Assembly (NCBI RefSeq): GCF_030144855.1
Contig: NC_082733.1
Span: forward strand, 37,076,001-37,140,000
Source: Hypanus sabinus
Lineage: Eukaryota
DNA: 64,000 bases
Direction: 5' to 3'
Below, piece after piece: positions 35,161 through 64,000 of the stretch (its first letter is position 1; every line of letters begins with the position of its first letter). The position numbers and the translations under genes are program-made. A model generated the notes under the pieces. That model ran no database searches. It was not told where the DNA came from and worked only from the letters and a program-made list of their open reading frames with translations.

Positions 35161-35244
35161 GCTCGAGCAAATGAGGAAACGGGAGAGCGAAGAGGAAGTT
35201 GCTGTTGCTACATTGGACCCTTTGCAGGGAGTACAAGCTGTACA

Positions 35245-40190: not shown

Positions 40191-40311
40191 TCGTATTGCA
40201 TAAACAAACTCATAACGTCATGCTGCATGGACGCTGGACCTTAGTGTCTGAACCGACCATCAAGCTTTTATTCACGGGAGTTTAGAAAAATGAGAGTGGA
40301 TCTTATAGAAA

Positions 40312-41300
40312 TCTATCCCACAAGGATCTGTTCTGAGACTTCCACTTTTCGTGATTTTTATTAACGACTTGGATGTGGAGGTAGAAGGGTGGGTTGGCAA
40401 GTTTGCAGATGACACAAAGGTTGGTGGTGTTGTAGATAGTATAAAGGATTGTCAAAAATTGCAGAGAGACATTGATAGGATGCAGAAGTGGCGCGAGAAG
40501 TGGCAGATGGAGTTCAACCCGGACAAGTGTGAGGTGGTACACTTTGGAAGGACAAATCCCAAGGCAGGGTACAAAGTAAATGGCAGGATACTTGATAGTG
40601 TGGAGGAGCAGAGGGATCTGGGGGTACATGTCCACAGATCCCTGAAAGTTGCTTCACAGGTAGGTAGGGTAGTTAAGAAAGCTTATGGGGTGTTAGCTTT
40701 CATAAGTCGAGGGATAGAGTTTAGGAGATGTGATGTAATGTTCCAGCTCTGTAAAACTCTGGTTAGGCCACACTTGGTGTACTGTGTCCAGTTCTAGTTG
40801 CCTCACTATAGGAAGGATGTGAAAGCATTGGAAAGGGTACAGAGGAGGTTTACCAGGATGCTGCCTGGTTTAGAGAGTAAGGATTATGATCAGGGATTAA
40901 GGGAGCTAGGGCTTTACTCTTTGGAGAGAAGGAGGATGAGAGGAGACATAATAGAGGTGTGCAAGATATTAAGAGGAATAGATAGAGTGGATAGCCAATG
41001 CCTCTTCCCCAGGGCACCACTGCTCAGTACAAGAGGACATGGCTTTTAGGTAAGGGGAGGGAAGTTCAAGGGGGATATTAGAGGAAGGTTTTTCACTCAG
41101 AGAGTGGTTGGTGCGTGGAATGCACTGCCTGAGTCAGTGGTGGAGGCAGATACACTAGTGAAGTTTAAGAGACTACTAGACAGATATATGGAGGAATTTA
41201 AGGTGGGGGGTTATATAGGAGGCAGGGTTTGAGGGTCGGCACAACATTATGGGCCAAAGGGCCTGTAACGTGCTGTACTATTCTATGTTCTATGTTCTAT
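40312..41300 (+). mobile_element. Young 5'-truncated CR1 LINE specific to copy A
   Basis: FINDLD...KFADDTK...WQMEFNPDKC...LVRPHL; (TTCTATG)n tail; empty site at about 61447 in the duplicate. Confidence 0.9.
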
Positions 41301-41759
41301 ATACTATGACCAGGACTGGGTAAATTAGATGCAGAAAGGAGTTCCTAATGATGAAGTCTGGATTGGATTTTTTTTTATCATCGCATGTTCCGAGACAGTG
41401 AAAAGCTTTTGTTTTGCATACTAGCCAGGCAGATCATACCATATTTCATTATGTCAATGCAGTTATAGAGGAAGTGCGGGGCAGGTAGACAAAGTCAAGG
41501 ACCAGGGAGTCACAGTGTAAGGATAAAGGAGTAAGTTCAACGTTCAAAGTAAAGTTTATTATCAGAGTACATACATGTCACCACATACAACCCTGAGATT
41601 CTTTTTTCTGCAGGCATACTTGTCAAATCTATAAAACAGTAACTGTAAACAGGATCAATGGACAACAAACTGTGCAAGTGCAGATATTTAAAAAGCAATA
41701 AAGAATAAGCATGAAATAACAAGATAAAAGAGTCCTTAACTGAGTGTAGTTATCTCCTT

Positions 41760-42930
41760 TTGTTCAAAGAGCCTGATAGTTGAGGGGTAGTAACCGAACT
41801 TGAAACTGCTGGTGTGAGTCCTGAGGCAGTTGTACCTTCTACCTGATGGCTACAGCAAGAAAAGAGCCTGGCCTAGGTGGTGAGGATCTTTGGTGATTGA
41901 TGTACCATCAATAACTCTCGGAGACGTGAGGCAAGGTATAGTCTTTTATTGGCTGGAAGAAAGAACAAGCAGCAATTGACCACCGCACTACATCCTGGAG
42001 ACTGAGGCTGGGGCTGTCTCTCCAATCGTCTTTATACCAGGGTCCGTGGGAGGAGCCACAGGAGCAGTCAACGGGGGGGGGGGGGGGGGGCGTGTCCAGA
42101 CGGGTATATGTAGTTCACCACAATGATGGACGCTGCTTTTCTACGGCAACATTTCATGTCAATGTGCTCAATGATTTGGAGGGTTTTCCCGTGATGTACT
42201 GGGCCGAATCCATAAACTTTTGAAGGATTTTCCGCTCAAAGGCATTGGTGTTCCCAAACCAGGCTGTAATGCAACAAGTCAATACACTTCCAATCACACG
42301 TCTGTAGAAGTTTGCCAAGGTTTTTGATGACATGCCAAACTCTCACAGGCTCCTGTAGAAGTAGAGGTACTGTCGTGCTTTCTTCGCAATTATAATTATA
42401 TGATAGGTCCAGGCCAGGTCCACTGAGATAGTGACATTCAGGAATTTAAAGTTACTGGCCCTGTCCACCTCGGATCCTTTGATGATTACTGGCTCTTGGA
42501 CCGTTGTTTTCCCTCTCCTGAAGTCAGCAATTAGTTCCTTGGTCTTATTGACATTGAGTGAGAGGTTGTTGTTATTACACCACTCAGCCAAATTTTCAAT
42601 TTCCCTCCTGTATGCTGATTCATCACCCCCTTTGTTACAGCCCACATCAGTGGTGACATCGACAAACTTGTGTATGGTGTTGGAACTGTACTTAGCCGCA
42701 CAGTCAAAGGCATGAAGCGAGTAGAGCAGGGGTTAAGTACACATCCTTGTGGAGCTCCTGTGCTGATGGAGATTGTGGAGGAAATGTTTTTTCCAATCCA
42801 AACTGACTGGGCTCTACAAGTGAGAAATCCAAGATCCAATTGCAAAAGAGTGTATTGAGGCTCAGGTCTTGAAGTTTACTGATTAGTTTTGAGGGGATGA
42901 TGGTGTTAAATGCCGAGCTGTATTCGAAAA
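41760..42930 (-). mobile_element. Rex1/Babar LINE fragment, duplicated at about 61915-63075
   Basis: [33 protein letters not shown]. Confidence 0.8.
41898..42122 (-). mobile_element. Short solo LTR (family length about 205-225 bp); other copies at 51267-51472 (+), 53550-53762 (-) and 62045-62271 (-)
   Basis: TGTGG...CATCA termini with internal TATA-like and AATAAA motifs; 5-bp TSD gtgat/atgat. Confidence 0.75.
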
Positions 42931-43255
42931 AGAATACCCTGATGAAGGGTCGCGACCCAAAACCTCAACTGTTCACTCTTTTCCATTGATGCTGCCTGTC
43001 CTGCAGAGTTCCCCCAGCATTGTGTGTGTTGCATAGAACAGAGAAATGTCTTCTCCCAGGGGAATTTATGAAATTCTCTATCTGAAAATTAGATATTATT
43101 GTAGAAATCAAAGGACATGGTGAGAAATCAACAAGGTATTAAAGTAACAAAGAATCTGCTGGAGGATCTCAGCTGTCAGCTGGTCAATCAGTGCCTGTGG
43201 TTGAGACCGTGCCTCTGGGCTGAGAGTGGAGAGGGGAGATGGGCATTATAAAGTG

Positions 43256-44095
43256 TGTTACGTATTCAGGCAACAATAAATATATGAGTTCGGCAAGGGT
43301 TTCTTATAACAAACAACACGTTTATTAAACACAGAAAACAAACCCCCCAAAAGTAAACAAACACTACCGTAACCGGAAACAGCTGCTGAGCGGCTGTTCA
43401 AACAGTTAGTAAAGTGATATTCCAAAACAGTTCTTAAAGTGATATTGCCAAAAGTTCGATATGCTCACAGTCCATTTAAAAGGAGAGACTTTACAGGACG
43501 ATTTAAGTTCTCTTTCACGTCGCTTGCTTCGATCCCCGACGTCGAAATTCCCACGAAGAATTTACGAAACCAGAACGGCTTAAAGGCACTGACCTTTCCT
43601 TCCTCACTACCTTCAATCCTTTCTAGGTAAACCTAGGGATTAGCACGAAGATAGTCAACGAAATCCTTCCAAATAAGGATCAAACAAAGGTCGCCCCCGT
43701 TTCACCGTAGAAAGCGATTCTCCTCGATCTTTAACTTCCAACCTTGAATCTTCACTCTCCTTTAATTCTCAAACTAACAGAATCATAAAGAACCTGTTGG
43801 CATTAACCTTTTAAACTTTAGGCATTAAATAAAAACTTCATCCTTCAACTAAACTGCGTCATCACTTCAAACACGCAGTGGCATGAAGTCAACTTGGCAA
43901 ATCCAGCCACGAACTGCCCCTCCTCACAGGGTGGGGTCTACCTTTTATAACCTGTAAAAAACCCATCACATGATCTCTACTGGCGGGAAAATGATGTCAT
44001 TCCACCATCACAAGACCATCACCTCAAGTCCAGTACAGCTTCAACCCCAGTCACATGACAAGGGCACCACTGTCATGTGTCACGAGTACGTAACA
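43256..44095 (-). repeat. 3' LTR (840 bp)
   Basis: TGTTACGTA...TACGTAACA inverted termini; adjacent polypurine tract GGAGGGAGG (minus strand) at 44096-44104. Confidence 0.95.
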
Positions 44096-44291
44096 CCTCC
44101 CTCCAAAAAAAACATTTTTGGTCTGACAAGAACAAAAATTTTTAACAATTGCTTACAAGAAAAACAAAGGTATAAATTTTATAACATACACAATACACAA
44201 CACCATCATATAACAGCTTATAAGTCACAATACAGTAGGAGTGTTACAATTGAAAAAAAAAGCACTCCAAAAAAAAAATTACAGTGTACAT

Positions 44292-44534
44292 TCAACATCG
44301 AGATAGACAATCAGCAACCACATTATCTTTACCTTTAATATGAGTTATCACAATATTGTACTCTTGTAACATCAAACTCCAATTTAATAACCTTCTGTTT
44401 TTGTTTTTCATCTTACACAGAAAAACTAACGGATTATGATCAGTGTAAACAATAAGTGGTTTCTGAGTTGTACTAACATATACCTCAAAATATTCCAAAG
44501 CTAAAACAAGAGATAACAATTCTTTCTCTATTGT
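44292..44534 (-). pseudogene. Orphaned C-terminal RNase H fragment of the LTR element
   Basis: IEKELLSLVLAL...VYTDHNPL...WSLMLQEY...KGKDNVVADCLSR, out of frame with the upstream ORF. Confidence 0.9.
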
Positions 44535-47500
44535 CTCTGCTCTAACTGTAAATGTACTAATTTTTCATCAATATTTTCCAGAATGGTTGAATTTGGTAAC
44601 CTAACAGAAACAATGTTGGATTTAGAATGAAAGTCAGATGAATCATCTATCACGTTCCTAGTTAAATCAAACTCATTCTCACTAACCACAACAGTCACAG
44701 TATCAGATTGTTTCTCAAAATATGGTTTCAACATATTTATATGGCAAAGTTGTGTTGACCTTCTACGATCTGGAGTTTTTACCACGTAACCCACATCATT
44801 AATTTTAGACACAATTTCATAAGGACCATGAAATCTAGCTTGTAAAGGATTTGTCTGCACTGGGAAAAGAACCAACACCTTATCTCCAGACTTAAACATC
44901 CTCATCCTAGCATCTTTATCATACCAAGTCTTCATTTTCTCCTGAGCCAACTTTAAATTTTCCTTAGCTAAACTACAAGCTTTATGTAACCTGTCCTTAA
45001 ATTTCAACACATAGTCCAACAAATTAGTGTGTACTTCCTTATTAATCCACTGTTCTTTCAACAAAGCTAAAGGTCCTCTAACTCTATGCCCAAACACAAG
45101 TTCAAATGGACTAAAACCTAAAGATTCCTGTACCGATTCCCTTACTGCAAATAAAAGTAAGTTTATACCCTCATTCCAGTCACTTTCATTTTCCACACAA
45201 AATGTCCTAATCATATTCTTGAGGGTAGAATGAAACCTCTCCAAGGCACCCTGCGATTCTGGATGGTATGCAGACGAAGTGATTTGCTTAGCTCCCAATT
45301 TATAAACTATCTGTTGAAACAATCCAGACATAAAATTACTGCCTTGATCAGTTTGTATCTCCTTAGGTAATCCAAAATAAGTAAAAAAATTTATAAGGGC
45401 CTTTGTCACAGTCTTAGCTTTTATATTCCTAAGTGGTACTGCCTCTGGAAACCTAGAAGAAGTACACATGATAGTCAACAAATACTGATAACCAGTTTTT
45501 GTCTTTGGTAATGGACCAACACAATCTACAATAACTTTAGAAAATGGTTCACCAAATGCTGGGATAGGTTGTAATGGAGCTACTGGTGTAACCTGATTTG
45601 GTTTACCCACAATTTGACAAGTATGGCACGTTTTACAAAACATCGCCACATCTTTTCTTAGACCAGGCCAGTAAAAATGTTTTAAAATCTTGTCCACAGT
45701 TTTCCTTACCCCTTGATGTCCACCTAAAGGCACACTATGAGCTAAAGTCAAAATCTCATTTCGATAAGCTTTTGGAACAACTACCTGGTAAACAACATTC
45801 CAATCCTCACTTGCAGGAATTGTAGGCGATCTCCACTTCCTCATCAACACTCCTTTTTCCAAGTAATATCCTACTGGCACCTTATCAATTTCACTATCTA
45901 GTAAAACCTGCTCTTTTAATTTTATAATCTCAGAGTCTCTATTCTGCTCTGCTATCATCTCCTTCCTAGACAAAGATAAATCTTTATAGTCAGACTTACT
46001 CCCAGAATCTTGTTCAAACAACGAAGATAAGAAAGTCTCTGACACATCCTCAAAACTCGAATCCTGAGTTGAACAGTCCTGAATAACAACCTCATTCTGC
46101 GCATCAATCTTTTTAGCCATAGCTCTAGTCACAACACAGGAAGAATCTGTGTTAGAATTCATCTCTGGTTCCTCTGACTCCATTGTCAAATGCACTTCAG
46201 GAAAAACTTGTCCACCTGCCAAGTCATTACCTAACAATAAAGAAATACCCTTCACAGGTAAGCTATGCTGTAATCCTACTTTAACAAATCCAGTAACTAA
46301 CCCTGACTTTAAATTTACTTTATGTAAATGTACAGGCATAAAATCACTTCCAACACCTCTTATGTAATTTACCTCACCAGTATCAGACTCTTCATTAAAC
46401 TTCAACACACTGTCTAACATCAATGATTGAGAAGCACCAGTATCCCTAAGGATTTTTATTGGCACCAGAGTAGATCCTTCCTTCAAGGATACAAACCCTT
46501 CAGTTACAAAATGATCATATCCCTTTCTAACTTGGTCAGACTCTAACAAAGCCTCATTTGTTTTTATCAAACCCTGTAACTTTACAGGTTCTTCAGTATG
46601 TTGCACACAAGCATCTGGAACTGCTTCCTTCTCTTTCTTTCTCAATTTGAAACAGTTAGCTATTACATGGCCAGGCTTCTTACAATAGTTACAAGTAAGA
46701 CCAAACTGTCTTTCCTTCACAGGCTTTCCTTTCTCATTAACTTTCTCATTAACCTCCGATTTAATTTCAAATTTATCTAGAGTCTCCGTGTTATTTTTCC
46801 TCTTAAAAATTCTGCCCTGAGGAAATTTGTTCTTATGGTTCAAAACATACTCATCAGCTAATCTAGCACAGTCCTGCAATTTATCAGTATCCTTCTCATT
46901 TAAGTAGGTCCTTACTTCAACAGGAATGCTTCTTTTAAATTCCTCCATTAAAATCAGCTCTCTCAATGTATCATAGTCCCCATTTACATTTTTAGAAGAA
47001 ACCCATCTCTCAAAACACATAGCTTTATCATAGGCAAATTCCACATAAGTTTTTTCCACAGACTTTTTCAAACTTCTGAATCTTTCCCTATATGCTTCTG
47101 GGACTAACTCATATGCGTTTAAAATATGACTCTTTACAATATCATAATCAAGAGCTTGTGCAGCTGTTAAAGCTGTGTAAACTTGTTGTGCTTTGCCTTT
47201 AATTACACTTTGTAACAACACTGACCATTTATCTTTCGGCCACTCTGACATCAGAGCAATAGTTTCAAAATGTTGAAAATACCTTTCCACTTCTGTTTCA
47301 CTAAATGGAGGGACCAATTTAATTTCTTGACTAGCAACAAACGTTTTTTTAGAACCAGAAGACTGATTTCCAGTCCTTAATTCCTCCATTGCATATGCAA
47401 ATTCTCTCTTCTTTTGTTCTGCCTCCAATTTACACCTCTCCAAATCAGCTTTACTTTGTTCCAATTTCATTTGTTCGATTTGCAACTGCATCTCCAGATT

Positions 47501-47707
47501 ACTTATTTGAAACGACTCTAAAATCGATTCATCAAAAACACCCGAATCCACATAGTGTGACGCGATTTTCCTCTGTATTACAGCCTTAGAAGTAGTCTGC
47601 AAAATACCTTTAAGTTGCAATCTACTAGCTATCTCAAACACCTCAGTTTTTTTCGCCGTCGCCAACACCTCTGCAGCTGGCGAAGCCAGAAACTCATCAA
47701 TATTCAT
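44528..47707 (-). CDS. Gag (SCAN-like, zinc knuckle)-protease-integrase polyprotein, 1059 aa, truncated before RT
   Basis: ATG at 47707; PEAYRERFR...ILMEEF (SCAN-like capsid); CNYCKKPGHVIANC; LRDTGAS; H..H..CHTC; IVDCVGPLP, TDQGSNF, LERFH; GPY motif. Confidence 0.9.
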   Translation of the reverse strand: MNIDEFLASPAAEVLATAKKTEVFEIASRLQLKGILQTTSKAVIQRKIASHYVDSGVFDESILESFQISNLEMQLQIEQMKLEQSKADLERCKLEAEQKKREFAYAMEELRTGNQSSGSKKTFVASQEIKLVPPFSETEVERYFQHFETIALMSEWPKDKWSVLLQSVIKGKAQQVYTALTAAQALDYDIVKSHILNAYELVPEAYRERFRSLKKSVEKTYVEFAYDKAMCFERWVSSKNVNGDYDTLRELILMEEFKRSIPVEVRTYLNEKDTDKLQDCARLADEYVLNHKNKFPQGRIFKRKNNTETLDKFEIKSEVNEKVNEKGKPVKERQFGLTCNYCKKPGHVIANCFKLRKKEKEAVPDACVQHTEEPVKLQGLIKTNEALLESDQVRKGYDHFVTEGFVSLKEGSTLVPIKILRDTGASQSLMLDSVLKFNEESDTGEVNYIRGVGSDFMPVHLHKVNLKSGLVTGFVKVGLQHSLPVKGISLLLGNDLAGGQVFPEVHLTMESEEPEMNSNTDSSCVVTRAMAKKIDAQNEVVIQDCSTQDSSFEDVSETFLSSLFEQDSGSKSDYKDLSLSRKEMIAEQNRDSEIIKLKEQVLLDSEIDKVPVGYYLEKGVLMRKWRSPTIPASEDWNVVYQVVVPKAYRNEILTLAHSVPLGGHQGVRKTVDKILKHFYWPGLRKDVAMFCKTCHTCQIVGKPNQVTPVAPLQPIPAFGEPFSKVIVDCVGPLPKTKTGYQYLLTIMCTSSRFPEAVPLRNIKAKTVTKALINFFTYFGLPKEIQTDQGSNFMSGLFQQIVYKLGAKQITSSAYHPESQGALERFHSTLKNMIRTFCVENESDWNEGINLLLFAVRESVQESLGFSPFELVFGHRVRGPLALLKEQWINKEVHTNLLDYVLKFKDRLHKACSLAKENLKLAQEKMKTWYDKDARMRMFKSGDKVLVLFPVQTNPLQARFHGPYEIVSKINDVGYVVKTPDRRRSTQLCHINMLKPYFEKQSDTVTVVVSENEFDLTRNVIDDSSDFHSKSNIVSVRLPNSTILENIDEKLVHLQLEQRQ

Positions 47708-47808
47708 TGCTGCCGAATACCACAACAAGCCAAACAAAAGAACCGAGTAATCCCCGTTTCCAAAACACCGATTTAAAAGTTAGCAAGCATTTAAACTCAA
47801 AAAATTCA

Positions 47809-47826
47809 ATCCCGGACGAGCCCCCA
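47809..47826 (-). other. Primer-binding site for tRNA-Pro
   Basis: Minus strand TGGGGGCTCGTCCGGGAT, the classic 18-nt tRNA-Pro PBS, 7 nt from the 5' LTR. Confidence 0.9.
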
Positions 47827-47833
47827 TATTTAA

Positions 47834-48674
47834 TGTTACGTATTCAGGCAACAATAAATATATGAGTTCGGCAAGGGTTTCTTATAACAAACAACACGTT
47901 TATTAAACACAGAAAACAAACCCCCCCAAAAGTAAACAAACACTACCGTAACCGGAAACAGCTGCTGAGCGGCTGTTCAAACAGTTAGTAAAGTGATATT
48001 CCAAAACAGTTCTTAAAGTGATATTGCCAAAAGTTCGATATGCTCACAGTCCATTTAAAAGGAGAGACTTTACAGGACGATTTAAGTTCTCTTTCACGTC
48101 GCTTGCTTCGATCCCCGACGTCGAAATTCCCACGAAGAATTTACGAAACCAGAACGGCTTAAAGGCACTGACCTTTCCTTCCTCACTACCTTCAATCCTT
48201 TCTAGGTAAACCTAGGGATTAGCACGAAGATAGTCAACGAAATCCTTCCAAATAAGGATCAAACAAAGGTCGCCCCCGTTTCACCGTAGAAAGCGATTCT
48301 CCTCGATCTTTAACTTCCAACCTTGAATCTTCACTCTCCTTTAATTCTCAAACTAACAGAATCATAAAGAACCTGTTGGCATTAACCTTTTAAACTTTAG
48401 GCATTAAATAAAAACTTCATCCTTCAACTAAACTGCGTCATCACTTCAAACACGCAGTGGCATGAAGTCAACTTGGCAAATCCAGCCACGAACTGCCCCT
48501 CCTCACAGGGTGGGGTCTACCTTTTATAACCTGTAAAAAACCCATCACATGATCTCTACTGGCGGGAAAATGATGTCATTCCACCATCACAAGACCATCA
48601 CCTCAAGTCCAGTACAGCTTCAACCCCAGTCACATGACAAGGGCACCACTGTCATGTGTCACGAGTATGTAACA
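47834..48674 (-). repeat. 5' LTR (841 bp)
   Basis: Near-identical to 43256-44095. Confidence 0.95.
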
Positions 48675-49317
48675 AGTGGAATGGAGGAGCAGTGAGGGAG
48701 GGGGCAAGTAGGTGATCGGTGGAACGAGGAGGGTGTGAAGGGTGATGATCCAGGTGGTGGGAGGTGGAAGACTGAGGCAGGTGAGTGATAGGCAAAAGCC
48801 GACGGAAAAGATTAAAATGAAAATTGTTGATTTTGGATGATCTGTCGTAATTATATTAAATGGTTCAAAGTTCACAGCAGATAAAAGAAGCACAATGGAA
48901 TCAATGATAAAATACACACAAAGGCAGACAAACAATGTGCAAAAGATGGCAAATTGCCCAAATACAAAAATAAAAATAATAATAATAATAATCAATAGGT
49001 AATAGTGAGAACATAAATTGTAGAGTCTTTGAAAGAGAGTCCATATGTTGTGGAGTCAGTTCAGTGTTGAGGTGAGTGAAGTTATCCACACTGGTTCAGG
49101 AGCCTGATGGTTGAGGGGTAAAAGCTTTTCCTGAAGCTGGTGTTGTGGGACCTGGGTACCTCCTCGAAGGCTGCAGTGAGAAGAGAGTATAACCTGAATG
49201 GTGAAATACACTCTGGGGCCAAATTGTTTGCTCCTCCCCTAATTTCTATGTTTTTATAACATGTCTCTGACTTTTCCCACACCATGTTCCTGACTGGTTC
49301 CTCCTTTCCTTCAACAG

Positions 49318-49464
49318 GACAGCTACAAAGGACACTCGTCTGTGGAGGATGCAAGTGCAGCGATGGAGCTCTTCAGACTTGTAGATAACACGTGGGAGCT
49401 TCAACTCACCAATGGTCTCAGGGTGGAGATAGTAAACCGATTTGAAGGACGTAACAGATATTAA
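49318..49464 (+). CDS. ISG20: ISG20 copy A last exon (48 aa plus stop); whole protein 192 aa
   Basis: Acceptor ctcctttccttcaacag; DSYKGHSSVEDASAAMELFRLV with ExoIII; TAA at 49462-49464; AATAAA at 49467 and 49510. Missed by the ORF track. Confidence 0.9.
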   Translation, partial: DSYKGHSSVEDASAAMELFRLVDNTWELQLTNGLRVEIVNRFEGRNRY

Positions 49465-51472: not shown

Positions 51473-53549
51473 CCCACAATGTCGTGCCAAACCAGTTGAA
51501 GAGTAAATCAAAAATACCCAAAACCTAGCCCCTCCTACCTACACAATGTCCATATTCCTCCATCTTCCTCATATCCATGTGCCAATCTAAACGTTTCTTA
51601 AAAGCCTCTAATGTATTTGCCTCTACCAAATCAGACAGCACATTCCAGGCACCCACCAATCTAAGTAAAAAACTTACCCCCACATCTGGACTGGGTATTG
51701 ATAGTGAATGATCAGCCATGATCTCAGAATGGCGATGCAGACTCGAGGGGCCGAATGGTCTACTTCAGCACCTATTGTCTATTGTCTATATCCCCTTTGA
51801 ACCTACCCTCTCTCACCCTCAATGCATGGCCTTCTGTATTAGACACTTCTACTTTGAGAAATCTGTTTACTCTATCTATCCCTTTTCATAATCTTATAAA
51901 CCTCTAACAGATAGCCTCTCAGCCTCCAGCGCTCCAGAGAAAACAACCCAAGTTTGTCCAGCTTCTCATGATAGCACAAACCCTCTAAACCAGGCAACAC
52001 CACGGTAAAACTTTTCTGCACCCTCTCCAAAGTCTCAGCGTCCTATAGTGGGGTGGCCAGAACGTTATGCAATCCTCTGGATGTGGCCTAACCAGAGATT
52101 TATAAAGTTGCAACATAATCTCTTGACTTTTGAACTCAATCCCTCAAATAATAAAAGCAAGCATTCCATAAGCAAAACAAATAAACAGGAACGTATACGC
52201 AATTAAAAATGAGACAGAAAAAAAGGATTTAAAATATGTGTCATAATCAAGATTCACAGAGTTTTACAGCATAGATGGTGTCATATGACATGGGTGATCA
52301 TGTCATAAGGGTGACATGGGTGATAAGATCGTAATTATTCTTGACAAATTATTCAGAAGTTGTTTGCCATTGCCTTCTTACAGGCAATATCTTTACAAGT
52401 TGGGTAACCCTAGCCATTATCAATACTGTTCAGGGTTTTTCTCCTGGAGTCAGTGGTCACACAAACCTGGACTGAAAAGCACCAGCTGCTCATACAACCC
52501 TCCACTACCTGCTCCCATGGCTTCACGCGACCCTGATCGGGGTGGGTGGGGTTAAGCAGGTGCTACACCTTGCCCAAGGGTGTCCTGCAGGCTAGTAGAG
52601 GGGAGGAGTGCCTTACACCTCCTTTGGTAGAGGCATGTCTTCGCACCGCTACTCATAACTCCCTTTACCAATCAAAAACTAACCGCATCCAAAATACAGT
52701 TCACGATAATGTTGAGACTGTACTGATCATCCTTCACTAGCGTGATCCCACCTGGAGATTCTTTAGACCGGTACTGGACATGTCCAAAAGTGAGTGGGTA
52801 GTTACCACTCTGCGGGAGAGCTGGGGAAATGGGGTATCTCTGGCTAAGCTGACTCAAACCTCTTTGCTGCAAATTGGCACCATCGATTAGCTATTGCTAT
52901 TTCTACCTGTGACTGTCAGGTTGCTGAGAAAAGGCAGTGAAGGAGCATCGACTACTTCATACAAACATCAAACCAATTATTCTTGCTGCCTTTGGTCTCC
53001 AGGGTCACAATCAGTCCACAGTCAAAGTCACTTTGATCACATTTCTTTCCCATTCTGACGTTTGGTTTGAACAAGGACTGAACCTCTTATGTCTGAATGT
53101 TTTTATGCTTTGAGCTGCTGCCACATGATTGGCTGGTAAGATATTTACATTAATGAGCAGCTGTACAGGTGCTCCAAATAAATGGCCACTGAGTGTATAT
53201 CGTGATATTTCTTTTCGCAATATTAAAAGTTACTCTAAGTTTCATGAAGAAACAAAAAATAAATAGGTAGTGCAAAAAGAGAGAAAAATACATGGGTATG
53301 AACAGTTGGCATAGGTTATGGAAACTTCCTGCTCCTGAGTGTAGATAAGGGTATCTTGTGGGTGCTCAGTAAATCTAACCCAGGAAGAGACTCCTTGGTT
53401 GGAGTTTCTGCTGCTGTTACCTGCTGGTCAAGATGAGGGAGGGCTGGCAGGTGTGGACCTCTCCAAGGTGAGTAACTGGTGGGGGTGGTGCAGTGGTCAG
53501 GGAAGTCACTCCACCCAACTGATTTGAACATAGAAGGGCACAACACACC

Positions 53550-53762
53550 TGATGCACCATCAATAACTCTGAGACATGGGTTAAGGTAGGCTTTTATGGG
53601 CTGGAAGAAAGAACAAGCAGCAAGTGACCACCACACCACATCCTGGAGACTGAGGCAGGGACTGTGTCTCCAATCGCCTTTATACCGGGGTCAGTGGGAG
53701 GAGCCACAGGAGCAGTCAGCGGGGGGAGTGGTTGTCCAGACAGGTATATGTAGTTCACCACA
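53550..53762 (-). mobile_element. Short solo LTR specific to the duplicate
   Basis: Absent at the paralogous site near 24090; flanked by acacacc on both sides. Confidence 0.8.
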
Positions 53763-54239
53763 ACACACCACAGGCCCTTCAGCAAACAATGTTTCTGATA
53801 ACTGGGGAGTCTAGTACCAGAGGGCCCAGCTGCAGATTACAAGGATGTTAGAACAGAGATGAGAAGGAATTTCTTTAGTCAAAGATGGTAAATCTGTAGA
53901 ATTAATGGCCACAGATGGCTGTGGAGGCCAAAACATTGGGTATATTTAAAGCAGAGGTTGCTAGGTTTTTGATTAGTAAAGATGTCAAAGATTATGGGAA
54001 GAAGACAGGAGAATGGGTTTGAGAGGGATAATAAATTAGTCATGATCAAATGGTGGAGCAGACACGTTGGACTGAATGACCTAATTCTTATCTTTGTGTT
54101 ATGGAACTTGTGCCGACCTTTTAACTTTCCTCTTAAGATCAATCTAAATGTTCCCTCCTGCTAAGTCCTTCGTTTCTCTTTCATCTATCCACCTTGTCTC
54201 TCAAATGTCCCTAATATATCTGTTTCACCTTTGTGACAG

Positions 54240-54430
54240 GTCGGCAGAGACGGTCACTGTTCTGTTGAGGATGCCCGCACTGCAATGCAATTGTACAAGC
54301 TAGTTGAAGTTTAGTGGGAAGAGAAGCTTCACAGCGAGTTGTGGACAGAACATGATCACGCGGTGTCTGACACAAGCTCTGAAATCAGTCACCACATGGA
54401 CGATCAGTATTGGCCTGCTGGATTACACAA
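54240..54430 (+). pseudogene. AEN: Duplicated AEN last exon with a premature stop
   Basis: Acceptor intact; VGRDGHCSVEDARTAMQLYKLVEV then TAG at 54312-54314 (CAG in AEN); homology ends at about 54430. Confidence 0.88.
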
Positions 54431-55420
54431 CTTGGTAGTGGGTACCAAGCACATCTTTCCCTCCCCCGCCTTTCCGCTTTCTGCAGGGATTGCTCCCTAC
54501 GCATCTCCCTCGTCCATTCCTTCCCCCCCCCCCCCAACATCCCTTCCCACCGATCACCCTCCTGGCACTTATCCTTGTAAACAGAACAAGTGCTACACCT
54601 GCCCTTACACTTCCTCCCTCACCACCATTCAGGGCCCCAGACAGTCCTTCCAGGTGAGGCGATACTTCACCTGTGAGTCGGCTGGTGTGGTATACTGTGT
54701 CTGGTGCTCCCGGTGTGGCCCTTTATATATTGGTGAGACCCGACGCAGACTGGGAGACCGTTTCGCCGAACACCTACGCTCGGTCTGCCAGAGAAAGCAG
54801 GATCTCCCAGTGGCCACACATTTTAATTCCATGTCCCATTCCCATTCTGATATGTCTATCCATGGCCTCCTCTACTGTCAAGATGAAGCCACACTCAGGT
54901 TGGAGGAACAACACCTTATATACCGGCTGGGTAGCCTCCAACCTGGTGGCAAAAACATTGACTTCTCTAACTTCCGTTAATGCCCCTCCTCCCCTTCTTA
55001 CCCCATCCGACATATTTAGTTTTTTCCCCTCTCCTTTTTCTTTCCCTCTTTCTGCCCATCACTCTGCCTGTTCTCCATCTCCCTCTGGTGCCTCCCTCCC
55101 CCTTTCTTTCTCCCTAGGCCGCCCATCCCATGATCCTTTCCCTTCTTCAGCTCTGTATCTATTTTGCCAATCACCTTTCTGGCTCTCAGCTTCACCCCAC
55201 CCCCTCCGGTCTTCTCCTATAATTTCACATTTTCCCTTCCCCCTCCTACTTTCAAATCCCTCACTATCTTTCCTTTCAGTTAGTCCTGACGAAAGGTCTC
55301 AGCCGGAAATGTCGACAGTGCTTCTCCTTATAGATGCTGCCTGGCCTGCTGCAATCCACCAGCGTTTTGTGTGTGTTGCTTGAATTTCCAGCATCTGCAG
55401 ATTTCCTCATGTTTGCTTTT
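54431..55420 (+). mobile_element. 5'-truncated Penelope-like element with an open GIY-YIG endonuclease domain (stop at 54980)
   Basis: CxxxxCxxC linker, VVYCVWCSRCGPLYIGETRRRLGDRFAEH, PVATHF, LEEQHLIYRLGSLQPGGKN, then the pyrimidine-rich tail. Confidence 0.9.
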
Positions 55421-57105
55421 GAAACATCCAGTAAGTAACAGTTCTGTGGGTGAAAACATCTTGTTAATGAGGGAGGTCAGACGAGAATGGCCAGACTGGT
55501 TCAAGCTGACAGGAAGGTGACAGGAACTCAAATAAATATGTATCATAACCATGGCATGCAGAAGGGCATCTCTGACTGCACACTGAACCTTGTTTGGCTA
55601 CAACAGCAGAAGACCACAATGGGTTCCACTCCTGTACCTAATAAAACAGACACTGATTGTGCATCGTGAAATTTGATTTTTTCATCAGCAGTAGAGTGAA
55701 GTGCATAAAAAATTCTAAGTTACAATAGGAAATATATGAAATAAACAAGTACAGTAGCGCAAACTGTGAGCAAGATAGTGAGGTTATGACTGGGGATTAT
55801 AGCCTTTGTTATAAATCCTGTAATTTGGAAGCTGATTTAAAATTTCAGGATGTTAACAGAAACTGAAAAGGCAGATGGTGAGAAACTATGTGCACTGGTC
55901 TGAGATCCGAGGATTAAAGGTTGTCTAACAAGTTAGACTTAAGGACATTTTTGATTTTCCAAAGAGTGAGGTTAGGCAGCACTTTTACACATGTAGTGGT
56001 AGAAATATGGAAATCTCTTCTACAAAATGCAGATGATGCTGGACCAACCATTAAATTTAAATCTGAGTTTGATAAATGTTTGTTTGATTAGTGAATTATT
56101 TAAGGACACGGTGGGAGGGGGAGTGAGCATGTCGGGATTAGGTCAACGATCAGTTGTAAGCTCAGTTTGAGGGGTATGGATAGGGTAAATGCAAGCAGGC
56201 TTTTTCCATTGAGGTTGGGTGAGACTAGAACTAGAGTTCATGGGTTAAGGATGAGAGGTGAAATTTTTAACGGGAACCTGAGATTGGTGAGACTGTGGAA
56301 TGATCTGCCAGTGGAAGTGGTGAATGTGGGTTCAATTTCAACATTTAAGAGACATTTGTGTATGTAGGTGGATGGGAGAGCAATTGTCCAGGTGCAGGTC
56401 AATAGGAATAGGCAGAAAAGTAGGTTGGCATGGATCAGATGGGCTGAAGGGCCTGTTGTTATGCCATAGGGTTCTGTGACTCAATGCATGTGGGAAAGGG
56501 TTTATGGGACGACTCATCTTCATCCTGTTCCTGAGTTAATTAAAAGATTAATTAAAATACCACAACATGCAATAGGCTGGCTGCTATTTGGAAACAGGAT
56601 AATGGAGCAACAGACATAAAATGCTGGAGGAACTCAGCCAGTCAGGCAGCATCTCTGAAAATAAATAAACATTTGTGGGAATGGGATAATAGAGTTTCCT
56701 TTGTAAGGGGTGACGTTCTTCAGAAACTCAAATGTAATGGAAGTTATACCCAAACCTTTTTTTTAACCATCTCTGGCATTTGCAAGGTAAATTAAAGCAT
56801 CACAGTGTGTGTACACGTATGGAGTCTGTCACAGGTCTTTTTGTCACACAGAGAAATTCATGCAGCTATCTTTTCCTGTCAGATGATCCAGGTTTGTGTA
56901 TCAACAACTTCTGGGGAATTGGATAGAAGAATATCCACTCGCTCTCTGCCGAAAAGTATTTTTAAGGTGGGGTGTATTCATGTGATATTGCAGTGGCAAG
57001 CCAACACAAAAAAATAAGCAAATAAGACAACATTGTAACCATGGATATTATTAGATGTGGGCGTATTCTATCTCTGTTGTTGACTTGATGATACTTTACT
57101 GAACA

Positions 57106-57172
57106 GAAAGTGAAACAAAGCTGTTGAAATTTAGTTATGCTTTGACACCAGCAGACGAGGGTTCGGTATAAA
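57106..57172 (+). promoter_or_regulatory. ISG20 copy B promoter: IRF-E/ISRE plus TATA box
   Basis: GAAAGTGAAAC at 57106-57116; TATAAA at 57167-57172. Confidence 0.7.
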
Positions 57173-57259
57173 GGTGATCGAGCAAATGAGGAAACAGGAG
57201 AGTGCAGAGGAAGTTGCTGTTGCTACATTGGACCCTTTGCAGGGAGTACAAGCTGTACA

Positions 57260-57490
57260 ATGATAGATCCTTCCAAGTATGTTGCCATGGACTGTGAGAT
57301 GGTGGGACTTGGCCGCAATGGCCGTGACAGTGGTCTGGCGCGCTGTAGCATCGTAGATTATGATGGGCAGTTAATCTATGACAAATTTATCAAACCAGAT
57401 GGGACAATTACAGATTACAGGACGCACGTGAGTGGGATTCGCCCATTGGATATGGAAACAGCTGTGCCTTATCAGATCGCCAGGGAAGAG
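57260..57490 (+). CDS. ISG20: ISG20 copy B exon 1
   Basis: MIDPSKYVAMDCEMVGLG; open frame; donor GAG|GTACAT. Confidence 0.88.
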
Positions 57491-59412
57491 GTACATTTCC
57501 CCGTTGTAATACTTCTTGTAATTATTCAGCCACATAACCATTCTTATTAATCCTTCCTTGAATATGTCTAACATTTGACTGAGAGATCTGGTGAAGGACT
57601 ACTTGATGGAAGTTTTTATGTAGCACCCATGGTGACATCATAAGATTTAGGTCACTTGGTCACTTTATGGACATACAGACTTTCTAAGCATATAAGCTAT
57701 CTTGTGTATTTATATTTATTGTGTTATGTTTTATTATCAATATTTGTTCTTTAACTTTTGTGGTTTTGTTTAAGCTGCATCGGATCCAGCAATAATTTTG
57801 TTCTCCTTACACTTGTGTTCATTAATCTAGTCTAAGGCTCAACCCTTTGAATACAGGATTCTCTTGGCAATGCTATAGAATGATCAGTGTAGGTCTTGTG
57901 CTGACGTCTCTTAAGTGGGACTTGAAGCATAGCCATATGGGCAGTCATTGTTCCCCAGTCCAAACTTAAGCTGTCAGACCAGTTGTGTTCAGCAGTCGTC
58001 AACCAATCAACTTCAGGAATGCTTTGATGGAACTGAAATGGGAGGCTGTCTATTCTTCTCACATCTCTTCCTCCCCACCCCAACCAATAACTCACCAAGA
58101 AACTTAACTGAATTAACTAGTTGCCCAAGAATCTTAGTGACAAGGCTGGTTTTTGAGGAGCGAAACCAAGAGCGTATTATCAATAGGAGAGATTCTGCAG
58201 ATGCTGGAAATCCAGAGCAAGACACACAAAATGCTGGAGGAACTCAGCAGGTCAGGCAACGTCTATGGAAAGGAGTAAAGAGTTGATGCTTTGTGCTGAA
58301 ATCCTACATCAAATCAGGAAAGGAAGATTGAAAGAGACAGAATAGGAAGGTGGGGGTGTGCGAGGGGAAGGGGTGCCAGCTGGCAGGTGATAGGTGAAGC
58401 CAGATAAGGGGGAAAATAAAAAAAAACGTTTAGTAATGTACAAGATGCTGGAGGATCTCCACAGGTTAGGCAGCATCTATGGAGAGGAATAAAGAGTAAA
58501 CGTTTCAGGCTGAGACCCATCATCAAGTATTTGTCAGATATATTATTAGCTTCCAGTGCATCAAAGCTTTCTAAAACATCAGTAAAGGTTCCCCTGTAAA
58601 ATATGAACAGATTTCTGAAATTTCAGTGATATTAGTAATGATTTTGGATAAAGTGGATTCTCTTTTCCATGGCATGTCATTGGTTCTGGGCGGACTGGGC
58701 TCATCTCTGCTGTATCTTGTTTCAGTCCAGAGTGAAGGGTGTCGATCCAAAATGCCGACTGTTTACTTCCCACCATAGATACTGCCTGACGTGATGGTTT
58801 TCCCCCGGCAGTGTGTGTGTTGCTCCAGATTCCAAAATCTGCAGTGCCGTGTGTCTCTGTAATCTGATTCCGTCCGATGTTTGTTTGATCAAACAGATCT
58901 TTATTTGGAAGTGTTATCAAAAGAAATGGATCCAAACTAAATAAGTGGAGTCTGAAATACATTTAATTACATCAAGGCTGATGTGTAAATACTCAGTGAT
59001 AGGTGTCGGAATGTACTGCCCGGTACGGCAGATACGTCAGAGACTTTCAATAGACGTTTACATGAATGTGTGAGAAATGGAAGGGTATGGACATTGTGTA
59101 TGCAGAGGGGATTATTTAGAATGGCCATTTGATTACTAATTTAATTGGATCGGCACAACACTGTGGGCCGGAAGGCCTGTCCTGCGCTATGATGTTTCTA
59201 TCTTCTTAAATGCTGGGCTGACAATCCTTTTCCTGTTATTCATACTTAACATAATTCAGAGTAATTAGCCGGTATCTGTGGCTAAGCAGTTAATATTTGT
59301 GTTTACTAACATTATGCTGGGGGCTTCCAGATAGCTTGACCGACACCCATCCTTCAGACAACACCAACAATCGATTGTTTTCTCTCTGAGCCACCTTGCT
59401 ATGTGCAAAAAA

Positions 59413-59540
59413 CGAAGGGTCTCAACCCGAAACGTCGACATTGCTTCTCCTTATAGATGCTGCCTGGCATGCTGTGTTCCACCAGCATTTTGTGTGTGTG
59501 TATTGTTTGAATTTCCAGCATCTGCAAATTTCCTTGTGTT
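59413..59540 (+). mobile_element. Short Penelope-tail insertion specific to copy B
   Basis: Flanked by TGCAAAAAA at 59404-59412 and 59541-59549; empty site near 38280. Confidence 0.75.
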
Positions 59541-59658
59541 TGCAAAAAAATCAATGGCTGCTCTGACACTTTGAAAGCAGCTTGAGATATCCTGAGGAAA
59601 AGTCGGGCAAACTCGGAGTGGAAGTTTGTTGCACTAACATTCTGCTGTTTCCATTCAG

Positions 59659-59859
59659 ATTTTGAAGATTTTGAAAGGAAAGATTATCGTGGGCCACGAT
59701 CCCAGGCCTGACTTCTACGTACTGAAAATGGACATTTCGAACTACGCCACACGGGACACCTCAACGTGCAAGTTACTGATCGCAAGAGCAAACCTGAAAA
59801 CCGACAGACGTGCCTCGTTAAAAGTTCTCTGCCAGAAACTGCTGGGGCAAAGAATACAG
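59659..59859 (+). CDS. ISG20: ISG20 copy B exon 2; exon 3 expected about 40 bp past the window end
   Basis: ILKILKGKIIVGHDPRPDF...LLGQRIQ; AG/GT intact; the window end aligns to about 49279. Confidence 0.88.
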
Positions 59860-62800
59860 GTACAGAGTTGGTTTGCAAAGTCACATGAAACTTCTTTTCC
59901 TCTGTAATGCTTCACCTTCTATTCCATCCATTCTATTCCATAGATGGCAAACAAGCAATGTGCAAACGACAACAAACTGCAAATACAAAATAATATTAAT
60001 AATAATACATAAGTAACAAATAAGGAGAACATGAGTTGTAGGCGCCTCATATGATAAGCCATTCAATCCCCGAATCATTTTTGTGAACCTCCTTTGAACC
60101 CTCTCCAATGTCAACATGCCCTCTCTTAGATAAGGGGCATTAATGATGATGAGTAGGTACATGAGTAGGAAAGATTTAGAGGAATACAAACTGAACATGA
60201 GGGAATGGGATTACCTCAAAGAGATGACTTTGTGGGCCTGGGCGAGTTGGGCCAAGGGGCTGGTTTTCATGTTGTGTCACTCTGGCTCTACAACAGTGCC
60301 GATGTATGATGGAATCCTGGCCTTTACACAGGATCTCTCAATGGCCGCACATCTGGCACAAACGGAAGAGCTACTTCATCACAGTTCCGATGACCTAGTT
60401 AATGATGACTTCAGCTACTGTCAATGTGGGGTTTGCCTGTTCTCCCTTTAACCAGCTGGGTTCCTCTAAATATTTCCTCCCACAATCCTAAGACATGAAG
60501 GTTAGACAGCCACTGTAACTTCCACCTAGTTGCTTGCAAGTTCATAACACCACAAGGTAGATGCAGATTAGGCCATTCAGCCGAGTAAGTCTGATCTGCC
60601 TTTTGATCATGGCTGATTTATTTTCCCTCTCCACCTCATTCTCCTATCTTCACCCTGTAACCTTTGATACCCTTACCAATCAAGAATGTATCAACCTCTG
60701 CTTTAAATCTACCCAATGACTTGATGTCCACAACTGCCTGTGGCAACGAATTCCGCTGATTCATTACCCTCCAGATAAGGAAATTCCTCATCATCTCTTT
60801 TCTAAAGGGATGTCCTCGTATTCTGAGGCATTTCAATCTTTGTTAGGTTTTGATGAGATCTCCCCTCATCCTTCTGCATACCAGTGAGTACAGGCCCAGA
60901 GCCATCAGTCGGTCCTTATATGGTATCGTTTTCGTTCCTGAAATCATTCTTGTGAATCTCTTCTGAACCAATGGCAGCACATCCTTTCTTAGATAAGGGG
61001 CCCAGTGACACCAATACTCCAAGTGACACCTTATAAAGCATCAACTTTACATCCTCCCTTTTATATTCTAGTCCTCTGCAAATGCATACTCACATTGCAT
61101 TTGCCTTCCCACTACCAACACAATCTCCAATTTAACCTTTAGAGAACCCTTTGCAACTCGTATTTTTGAATTAAAACAGCCTATGCTTTTATTTCTTCCT
61201 CCAAAATACATGACCATGCAATTCCTGGCACTATATTCCATCTGCCACTTGCTTGCCCATTCTCCTAATCTGTCTATGTTCCTCTGCAGACTCGCTGCTT
61301 CCTCAACGCTACCTGCCCTCCACCTGTCTTCGTATTGCATAAACAAACTCATAACGTCATGCTGCATGGACGCTGGACCTTAGTGTCTGAACCGACCATC
61401 AAGCTTTTATTCACGGGAGTTTAGAAAAACGAGAGTGGAGCTTATATAAACTATGACCAGGACTGGGTAAATTAGATGCAGGAAGGAGTTCCTAATAATA
61501 AAGTCTGGATTGGATTGTTTTTTATCATTGCATGTTCCGAGACAGTGAAAAGCTTTTGTTTTGCATACTAGCCAGGCAGATCATACCATATTTCATTATA
61601 TCAATGCAGTTATAGAGGAGGTGCAAGGGAGGTAGACAAAGTTAAGGACCAGGGAGTCACAGTGTAAGGATAAATGAGTAAGTTCAACTTTCAAAGTAAA
61701 GTTTATTATCAGAGTACATACATGTCACCATATACAACCCTGAGATTCTTTTCCCTGCAGGCATACTTGTCAAATCTATAAAACAGTAACTGTAAACAGG
61801 AGCAATGGACAACAAACTGTGCAAGTGCAGATATTTAAAAAGCAATAAATAATAAGCATGAAATAACAAGATAAAAGAGTCCTTAACTGAGTGTAGTTAT
61901 CTCCTTTTGTTCAAAGAGCCTGATAGTTGAGGGGTAGTAACCGAACTTGAAACTGCTGGTGTGAGTCCTGAGGCAGTTGTACCTTCTACCTGATGGCCAC
62001 AGCAAGAAAAGAGCCTGGCCTGGGTGGTGAGGATCTTTGGTGATTGATGTATCGTCAATAACTCTCGGAGACGTGAGGCAAGGTATAGTCTTTTATTGGC
62101 TGGAAGAAAGAACAAGCAGCAATTGACCACCGCACTACATCCTGGAGACTGAGGCTGGGGCTGTCTCTCCAATCGCCTTTATACCAGGGTCCGTGGGAGG
62201 AACCACAGGAGCAGTCAACGGGGGGGGGGGGGGGGGGGCGTGTCCAGACGGGGTATATGTAGTTCACCACAATGATGGACGCTGCTTTTCTACGGCAACA
62301 TTTCATGTCAATGTGCTCAATGATTTGGAGGGTTTTCCCGTGATGTACTGGGCCGAATCCATAAACTTTTGAAGGATTTTCCGCTCAAAGGCATTGGTGT
62401 TCCCAAACCAGGCTGTAATGCAACAGTCAATACACTTCCAATCACACGTCTGTAGAAGTTTGCCAAGGTTTTTGATGACATGCCAAACTCTCACAGGCTC
62501 CTGTAGAAGTAGAGGTGCTGTCGTGCTTTCTTCGCAATTATAATTATATGACAGGTCCAGGCCAGGTCCACTGAGATAGTGACATTCAGGAATTTAAAGT
62601 TACTGGCCCTGTCCACCTCGGATCCTTTGATGATTACTGGCTCTTGGACCGTTGTTTTCCCTCTCCTGAAGTCAGCAATTAGTTCCTTGGTCTTCTTGAC
62701 ATTGAGTGAGAGGTTGTTGTTATTACACCACTCAGCCAAATTTTCAATTTCCCTCCTGTATGCTGATTCATCACCCCCTTTGATACAGCCCACATCAGTG

Positions 62801-64000
62801 GTGACATCGACAAACTTGTGTATGGTGTTGGAACTGTACTTAGCCGCACAGTCAAAGGCATGAAGCGAGTAGAGCAGGGGTTAAGTACACATCCCTGTGG
62901 AGCTCCTGTGCTGATGGAGATTGTGGAGGAAATGTTTTTTCCAATCCAAACTGACTGGGCTCTACAAGTGAGAAATCCAAGATCCAATTGCAAAAGAGTG
63001 TATTGAGGCTCAGGTCTTGAAGTTTACTGATTAGTTTTGAGGGGATGATGGTGTTAAATGCTGAGCTGTATTCAATAAAGAATACCCTGATGAAGGGTCG
63101 CGACCCAAAACCTCAACTGTTCACTCTTTTCCATTGATGCTGCCTGTCCTGCAGAGTTCCTCCAGCATTGTGTGTGTTGCATAGAACAGAGAAATGTCTT
63201 CTCCCAGGGGAATTTATGAAATTCTCTATCTGAAAATTAGATATTATTGTAGAAATCAAAGGACATGGTGAGAAATCAACAAGGTATTAAAGTAACAAAG
63301 AATCTGCTGGAGGATCTCAGCTGTCAGCTGGTCAATCAGTGCCTGTGGTTGAGACCGTGCCTCTGGGCTGAGAGTGGAGAGGGGAGATGGGCATTATAAA
63401 GTGGAATGGAGGAGGGGTGAGGGAGTAGGTGATCGGTGGAACGAGGAGGGTGTGAAGGGTGGTGATCCCGGTGGTGGGAGGTGGAAGACTGAGGCAGGTG
63501 AGTGATAGGCAAAAGCCGACGGAAAAGATTAAAATGAAAATTGTTGATTTTGGATGATCTGTCGTAATTATATTAAATGGTTCAAAGTTCACAGCAGATA
63601 AAAGAAGCACAATGGAATCAATGATAAAATACACACAAAGGCAGACAAACAATGTGCAAAAGATGGCAAATTGCCCAAATACAAAAATAATAATAATAAT
63701 AATCAATAGGTAATAGTGAGAACATAAATTGTAGAGTCTTTGAAAGAGAGTCCATATGTTGTAGAATCTGTTCAGTGTTGAGGTGAGTGAAGTCATCCAC
63801 ACTGGTTCAGGAGCCTGATGGTTGAGGGGTAAAAGCTTTTCCTGAACCTGCTGGTGTGGGACCTGGGGCTCCTCTACCTCCTTCCCGAAGGCTGCAGTGA
63901 GAAGGGAGCATAACCTGGATGGTGAAACCTGCTCTGGGGCCAAATTGTTTGCTCCTCCCCTAACTTCTATGTTTTTACAACGTGTCTCTGATTTTTCCCA

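Follow-up and report, generated by a model that had tools for sequence, protein, structure and literature searches.

A tandem ISG20 pair in the stingray Hypanus sabinus: a mosaic of homogenised and old tracts with exon 2 and the C-terminal tail kept copy-specific

ISG20 is a broad antiviral exonuclease whose choice of target is still debated. In a 64-kb stretch of DNA from Hypanus sabinus, the Atlantic stingray (contig NC_082733.1, positions 37,076,001 to 37,140,000 of the forward strand; hereafter the window, with positions counted from its first letter) the gene order is AEN, ISG20-A, ISG20-B, a tandem ISG20 pair lying 3′ of AEN. We find that divergence between the two copies (A and B) follows a mosaic in which old tracts alternate with homogenised ones, well past chance, and that the residues which set the copies apart in exon 2 and the C-terminal tail do so in a second dasyatid genus as well. 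The explanation that we favour, and regard as probable rather than assured, is an old tandem duplication in dasyatids after which B diverged in function, with ongoing non-allelic gene conversion between the copies and selection that removes convertants in exon 2 and the tail.

Results

Divergence between the copies is a mosaic

A six-frame search of the window, which contains no N, with exon peptides found three ISG20-like genes, all on the + strand. The upstream gene is closest to the AEN proteins of the comparison set (65-67% similarity), which gives the layout AEN, ISG20-A, ISG20-B. For the ISG20 pair, the protein search was led by matches to ISG20 or ISG20-like entries from rays, sharks and tetrapods, and the gene adjoins AEN. 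The coding exons of the pair within the window are as follows.

35245-35475, + strand: copy A coding exon 1 (77 codons; splice donor GTAAGT; placed from the open reading frame (ORF), tblastn and splice context)
38393-38593, + strand: copy A coding exon 2 (67 codons)
49318-49464, + strand: copy A coding exon 3 (48 codons plus stop; carries the ExoIII His and Asp)
57260-57490, + strand: copy B coding exon 1 (splice donor GTACAT, weaker than that of A)
59659-59859, + strand: copy B coding exon 2 (10 copy-specific residues common to Hemitrygon B)

Self-comparison resolves two colinear units, in which 33405-43255 plus 48679-49279 (unit 1) match 55422-64000 (unit 2). We aligned A with B globally using MAFFT (8385 aligned sites, 214 substitutions, one 22-bp inversion masked). 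All comparisons of genomic DNA come from the one Hypanus genome, and the between-species signal comes from protein sequences. Substitutions are strongly clumped: the dispersion index per 100 bp is 3.95, and none of 2000 permutations exceeded 1.63. A hidden Markov model with two rates places 77% of sites at a divergence of 0.67% and 23% at 8.2%, improving the log-likelihood by 80 over a single rate. The tracts alternate along unit 2 as listed here, with the homologous positions of copy A in brackets.

55476-56978 (A 33459-34964), + strand: homogenised tract 5′ of the promoter; about 0.5%
56979-57259 (A 34965-35244), + strand: B core promoter and 5′ untranslated region block; 6.1%
57608-58317 (A 35592-37188), + strand: exon-free raised region in intron 1; about 4.7% past the A-only insertion (36527-37188)
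58318-59369 (A 37189-38241), + strand: homogenised tract in intron 1; 0.78% with the inversion masked
59370-59979 (A 38242-38837), + strand: high-divergence block around exon 2; 47/463 = 10.2%
59980-61444 (A 38838-40305), + strand: homogenised tract in intron 2; 1.1%
61445-61762 (A 41298-41615), + strand: exon-free high block in intron 2; 5.3%
61763-63755 (A 41616-43255 plus 48679-49044), + strand: homogenised tract in intron 2; about 1.0-1.1%
63756-64000 (A 49045-49279), + strand: high-divergence intron block just 5′ of exon 3; 22/235 = 9.4%

The low-divergence tracts together hold 35 substitutions and 8 small insertions or deletions (indels), an overall divergence of 0.55%. There are 23 indel events between A and B, and the indel density of high-state non-coding DNA is about 14 events in 1595 bp. 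The block around exon 2 is flanked by a 138-bp short interspersed element (SINE) in B (59407-59544) and by a 133-bp indel in A (38660-38792). A peak of 19 mismatches, at 37834-37856 in A against 58962-58984 in B, proved to be a single 22-bp micro-inversion and not a divergence peak, and this is the inversion that was masked; it sits within an otherwise homogenised tract. Two long non-coding tracts for which an earlier note on this DNA had estimated about 1% divergence come out at 0.90% and 1.08%.

A second genus keeps the same copy-specific residues

A cluster look-up found the pair in the dasyatid Hemitrygon akajei too, as an A-type and a B-type protein whose accession numbers follow one another; their genes lie in the same A-B order, with the same TMED-like gene downstream. 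Mobula birostris has a single ISG20, and its gene table holds no other gene within 10 kb upstream. The protein search returned only two ISG20-like proteins for Hypanus, and two ISG20 clusters were found in no other listed species, in a search whose clusters would also have merged any paralogues above 90% identity.

When the A and B proteins of both genera are compared four ways, 15 sites are copy-specific in both, most of them (10) in exon 2, with 4 more in the tail (residues 176-184) and one in exon 1. The duplication and the differences in exon 2 and the tail therefore predate the split between the genera. Comparison of the genera shows 0/67 changed residues in B exon 2 and 17/125 in the remainder of B (Fisher P = 0.0008), so B exon 2 has been under strong purifying selection since the split and is not decaying. 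The A orthologues of Hypanus and Hemitrygon differ at 10/192 residues.

A different signal comes from residues 6, 147, 148 and 164, which are species-specific in both copies; no site in the four-way comparison groups in the conflicting way. At residues 147, 148 and 164, all in exon 3, both Hypanus copies are derived, and both Hemitrygon copies share the other state with Mobula. Conversion after the split has therefore entered exon 3 in Hypanus, and the earlier proposal that conversion homogenises non-coding DNA has to be widened to include coding sequence. Gene conversion between the copies, which the same note had proposed, is well supported on these comparisons because the two-rate mosaic and residues 147, 148 and 164 both point to it. 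The orthologous proteins are 5-9% apart in residues, so that neutral DNA of the two species must have diverged many times further than 0.55%, and the homogenised tracts would then have been reset long after the split; they appear, in other words, to be younger than that split.

The private replacements of B are clustered, and the exon concerned differs between the genera: Hypanus has 5 in exon 1 (residues 2-66), and Hemitrygon has 5 in the 5′ portion of exon 3 (residues 145-169). These clusters could be remnants of an old B-type sequence that A replaced in the other genus, or they could be lineage-specific bursts.

Exons lie in high blocks but are no older than their flanks

Exons are more diverged than whole introns (6.5% against 2.3%, odds ratio 2.9). 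A recount returned the same figures as before for exon 1 (10/231 nt, 7 aa), for exon 2 (18/201 nt, 13 aa) and for their split into 20 nonsynonymous and 8 synonymous differences. The earlier figure of about 17 differences in 210 bp of proximal promoter holds as a count but for a longer interval: there are 17/279 over 34965-35244 and 12/209 in the 210 bp before the ATG. The idea that divergence peaks at exons and promoter and not at neutral DNA does not survive the alignment, since the high-divergence blocks measure 0.2-0.7 kb, their non-coding parts equal or exceed the exons, and exon-free blocks are raised as well. Around exon 2 the left intron flank is 8.0% diverged, the exon 9.0% and the right flank 15%. 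High-state non-coding DNA is 9.5% diverged, and in the exons the synonymous divergence (dS) is 0.087 and the nonsynonymous divergence (dN) 0.062. The agreement of exon dS with the high-state non-coding level means that the exons are of the same age as unconverted neutral DNA, and neither older nor faster.

The placement of the exons can nevertheless be scored. Exon 2 is in the top 4% of windows of equal size (P = 0.036), the last 150 bp before exon 3 are in the top 1% (P = 0.009), and the joint placement of exons 1 and 2 in high blocks has a circular-shift P of 0.038. Judged from this window alone, the tendency of exons to fall in high blocks is real, though modest.

Two other sources of exon divergence were considered and rejected. 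CpG hypermutability does not account for it, as removal of CpG transitions leaves exons at 4.6% and high-state non-coding DNA at 7.8%. Nor did AEN serve as a conversion donor: at the 28 exon differences between the copies, AEN agrees with A at 6, with B at 6 and with neither at 16.

Both copies keep the exonuclease signature, and B has changed faster

Reading frames and catalytic residues are intact in both copies. Both A and B carry the DEDDh residues D11, E13, D95, H150 and D155, whose human counterparts in the alignment are D11, E13, D94, H149 and D154. The RNase_T domain (PF00929) is found in B at residues 8-163 (E = 5.8e-16), A has a precomputed Pfam hit, and B aligns with the human ISG20 structure 1WLJ at E = 4.2e-54. 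There are no coding indels between A and B. At the indel density of high-state non-coding DNA, 3-4 would be expected in exons 1 and 2, or 4.4-5.1 with exon 3 included, and a Poisson estimate puts the probability of their absence at about 0.006-0.045.

The ratio of nonsynonymous to synonymous divergence (dN/dS) between A and B is 0.71 overall (0.63 in exon 1, 0.80 in exon 2). Between A and its skate orthologue it is 0.11-0.15, and the nonsynonymous to synonymous counts differ accordingly (20:8 against 28.5:49.5, contrast P = 0.0017). As judged from these codon comparisons, constraint is altered after the duplication relative to its long-term level. The coding outgroup is a skate transcript at a dS of about 0.8, so that it polarises replacements poorly and synonymous sites unreliably.

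B is the faster of the two lineages: it has 15-17 residues of its own, and A has 3-7 (P = 0.002 if Pristis serves as outgroup, 0.09 if Mobula does). Several of the B changes fall at positions that are invariant or nearly so among the other aligned cartilaginous fish. One replaces Ser with Pro directly before the ExoII catalytic Asp, where Pro occurs in 0/118 other aligned sequences.

The promoters differ in an interferon-response motif

The B core promoter lies in one of the diverged blocks. Each copy has a TATA box (57167-57172 in B, 35152-35157 in A), and B alone has the core of an interferon-stimulated response element (ISRE).

57106-57116, + strand: ISRE core GAAAGTGAAAC, B only; 154 bp before the ATG and 55 bp 5′ of the TATA box
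35090-35101, + strand: homologous A site GAAAGTGACGAC, with the second half-site broken

No other ISRE core was found within 1 kb upstream of A. Human ISG20 is induced via a single ISRE (PMC9157404). The two NCBI isoforms of A, XP_059808929 and XP_059808930, have a first exon at 24758-24781 with an ATG that overlaps the AEN stop codon. This upstream exon is joined to position 35137 in the A promoter region, downstream of the broken ISRE and upstream of the TATA box, and adds 44 residues in frame; unit 2 lacks it. It could represent an AEN-ISG20 read-through transcript or an alternative promoter. Together, the ISRE and first-exon differences are hints, read from the DNA, that A and B may be regulated differently.

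Duplication units and private insertions

The wider locus includes the upstream gene, a partial copy of it, and three insertions that are private to A.

18512-24761, + strand: AEN-like gene, with exonuclease-domain exons at 18512-18742, 21027-21227 and 24558-24761
53007-54430, + strand: duplicated AEN 3′ end, homologue of 23548-24748 with the last AEN exon included; 3-10% diverged; starts the second duplication unit
35630-36526, strand not assigned: A-only insertion in intron 1, about 887 bp
40306-41297, + strand: A-only insertion of 992 bp, a 5′-truncated long interspersed element (LINE) with a reverse-transcriptase fragment
43256-48678, - strand: A-only long terminal repeat (LTR) retrotransposon in intron 2, with LTRs at 43256-44095 and 47834-48674

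Because a copy of the AEN 3′ end is present in unit 2, the duplicated unit must have spanned from inside AEN through ISG20. The fragment is 3-10% diverged from its source (about 10% over 53007-53270, a stretch that the earlier note had also marked as more diverged), which fits an old duplication. It contains a pseudo-exon at about 54240-54430, a copy of the last AEN exon with an in-frame stop. The homology to AEN ends abruptly at 24748 and 54430, 13 bp short of the AEN stop codon, and the 1 kb of unit 2 past 54430 has no counterpart in the following 8.6 kb of unit 1, dispersed repeats excepted.

The SINE-like insertion private to B (59407-59544) lies 114 bp 5′ of exon 2 and has an A-rich target duplication. 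Diverged relatives of this repeat are found at 55289-55416, 32246-32333, 42944-43029 and 63086-63180. The LTR retrotransposon of A is young, with LTRs that are 99.8% identical, TG..CA ends and a short target-site duplication. A minus-strand ORF at 44531-47737 (1069 aa) encodes a SCAN-like gag domain and a full integrase. After this frame comes a piece of RNase H at 44295-44519, which is only the tail of a reverse transcriptase-RNase H domain. No reverse transcriptase core was found in 43256-48678, and the integrase lies upstream of RNase H. We take this order to resemble that of Gmr1-like Ty3/gypsy elements.

Gene models

The protein of copy A matches XP_059808929 and XP_059808930 of Hypanus sabinus, and a look-up found no exact database record of the 192-aa form. 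Exons 1 and 2 of copy B encode a sequence identical to XP_059808931 of the same species; exon 3 of B lies about 40-185 bp past the end of the window, and B covers 6926 bp according to the gene table. At the exon 1 splice donor, A reads GTAAGT (35476-35481) and B reads GTACAT (57491-57496), a poorer match to consensus; both exon 2 donors are of the GTACA type. We found no transcript support for A or B beyond the NCBI models. An Rfam scan of positions 1-64000 gave no family at the gathering score, and the one literature collection searched contained no paper on ISG20 in cartilaginous fish.

Discussion

The sequence of events that we propose begins with a tandem duplication of the AEN 3′ end and the ISG20 segment in a dasyatid ancestor, before Hypanus and Hemitrygon split. 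Copy B would then have gained about 12 replacements, mostly in exon 2, the segment that directly follows the ExoII catalytic Asp, and at the C-terminal end of the protein, and A would have gained 3-4. Repeated non-allelic gene conversion would have reset about three quarters of the aligned Hypanus locus to 0.5-1%, overwriting the 5′ part of exon 3 as it did so. Tracts that erased the residues by which the copies differ in exon 2 and the tail would have been lost in both genera, most likely by selection, because the two proteins, as we propose, now differ in function. The signs of such a difference are indirect, namely the stasis of B exon 2, its Pro before the catalytic Asp and the contrast in the ISRE. 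The blocks would be wider than the exons because unconverted exons carry their adjoining non-coding flanks along, passively protected. In this proposal it is selection, and not the mechanics of recombination, that would keep the blocks unconverted. The earlier suggestion that functional differences are protected has fair support in exon 2 and the tail, with their share of the 15 shared residues and the 0/67 of B exon 2. Support is lacking for the part of the same inference that would set the exons above unconverted neutral DNA in divergence.

Several observations weigh against this explanation. The dN/dS of 0.71 is not different from 1 (P = 0.5), much as the earlier note had judged it to be near 1 and not clearly above. 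The formal alignment upheld the link between exons and peaks for exons 1 and 2 jointly, and exon 1 by itself is unexceptional for a 231-bp window (placement P = 0.23). The association is one of three exons only, and 3 high blocks contain no exon at all. The five private changes in Hypanus B exon 1, and the five in the 5′ part of Hemitrygon B exon 3, resemble weak constraint. We infer the grouping of the introns, the timing of conversion and the polarity of the promoter change, rather than reading them from the DNA of relatives. Finally, every exon-bearing block adjoins a large indel or transposable-element insertion, so that blockage of conversion by heterology could give much the same picture.

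This last point leads to an account in which the patchwork is neutral and set by mechanics alone: conversion tracts land at random and are halted or suppressed near large heterologies and in segments already diverged, the exons are there by chance, and B is under relaxed constraint. In its favour, 15 of the 23 indel events, and 4 of the 5 large ones, are in or at the edge of high blocks; exon 2 is confined to only 381 bp of homology between the 138-bp SINE of B and the 133-bp indel of A; high blocks without exons exist; B is the faster lineage; and the dN/dS between the copies is indistinguishable from 1. Indels, however, pile up in old unconverted DNA regardless, and may mark the blocks without causing them. 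Divergence is low to the left of the 992-bp LINE insertion and on either side of the LTR element, and heterology alone therefore makes no block. Exon 2 and the tail have moreover stayed copy-specific in two independent lineages, and the identity of B exon 2 in two genera, set against 17 changes in the rest of B (P = 0.0008), is unlike relaxed constraint; the earlier note had offered relaxed selection as its own alternative, and for exon 2 and the tail that alternative is weakened by the same comparison. We think the mechanical account unlikely, though quite conceivable. The earlier note had likened the protection of functional differences to immune-gene arms races. In an ongoing arms race, positive selection would act again and again on the exons, so that the two copies part faster there than in neutral DNA. 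The excess of replacements over the long-term rate (P = 0.0017) and the clustering of private B changes in exon 1 of Hypanus and the 5′ part of exon 3 of Hemitrygon are in keeping with such a race, and by a rough calculation the dN/dS of exon 2 on the B stem branch would be at least 1. Yet dN/dS between the copies is 0.71, with dN (0.062) below both dS (0.087) and the 9.5% of the non-coding high state, and the copy-defining sites are unchanged since the genera split, which is the mark of one shift followed by constraint and not of turnover. An arms race in this sense thus seems improbable to us, and the parallel drawn in the earlier note is not supported.

A third account would make the duplication young, at about 0.6%, with the diverged blocks brought in from a third donor (AEN, or an unseen ISG20 paralogue or haplotype), or would make the near-identical tracts artefacts of assembly. 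We found no positive support for it. The matches of AEN are divided evenly between the copies, 6 and 6, with 16 of the 28 differences matching neither; the protein search yielded just the two Hypanus proteins; and the 3-10% divergence of the AEN 3′ fragment speaks of an old event. An independent assembly, that of Hemitrygon, contains the pair as well and agrees in the copy-specific residues, and in Hypanus the low tracts carry their 35 substitutions and 8 small indels, with private transposable-element insertions in each copy. We consider this account highly improbable.

Returning to conversion opposed by selection, the nearest parallel is found in the L and M opsins of catarrhines. In a study of gibbons, the introns of these genes were homogenised by conversion, convertants that blurred the two genes were selected against, and exons grouped by gene while the conversion signal grouped by species (PMC3213168). 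The opsins and stingray ISG20 are alike in being tandem paralogues with homogenised introns and particular exons kept divergent, and the ISG20 pair has the corresponding features: a mosaic past chance, protected segments that group by gene, and exons that stand above introns overall. Spectral tuning is the known role of the residues protected in the opsins, for which population samples, intron trees and GENECONV tracts also exist; the stingray case differs in drawing on the DNA of one genome, in taking its species-level signal from proteins, and in showing conversion into part of exon 3. Human RHD and RHCE, and the two-locus models of conversion and selection of Innan and of Teshima and Innan, reportedly give a peak around a selected exon on a homogenised background, with a width set by tract length. 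The stingray pair involves other genes in another lineage, and has three protected segments rather than one. The locus is a fresh example of a well-known evolutionary pattern, and its mechanism is textbook.

As ISG20 genes, stingray A and B are like those of other vertebrates in aligning with human ISG20 (E = 4e-54), in keeping the DEDDh residues and the RNase_T domain, and in lying downstream of an AEN-like gene. Near its TATA box B, unlike A, has an ISRE core, the kind of element by which the human gene is induced. The stingray genes differ from the other vertebrate ISG20 genes compared here in standing two in tandem, in the Pro before the ExoII Asp of the B type, and in the annotated first exon of A inside the AEN 3′ end. 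A bolder interpretation, possible but on the whole doubtful, is that B is a second, neofunctionalised ISG20 of dasyatids. B would have gone through a short burst of change in the segment that follows the ExoII motif, the Pro before the catalytic Asp among them, and in the tail, and would then have been frozen; it would have kept the ISRE, and A would have lost it and come to be transcribed in part from the AEN 3′ end. Selection against convertants would then maintain a division of labour between one inducible enzyme with an altered substrate or target and another that is more constitutive.

For conversion itself, the locus offers a clean and compact case in which to study tract length and anti-conversion selection in a slowly evolving vertebrate lineage. 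For the enzyme, a pair kept distinct at about 15 residues since the genera split amounts to a natural experiment, and those residues point to possible changes in enzyme behaviour that leave catalysis untouched. Its value is that of a worked example and of a lead for the biochemistry and function of ISG20.

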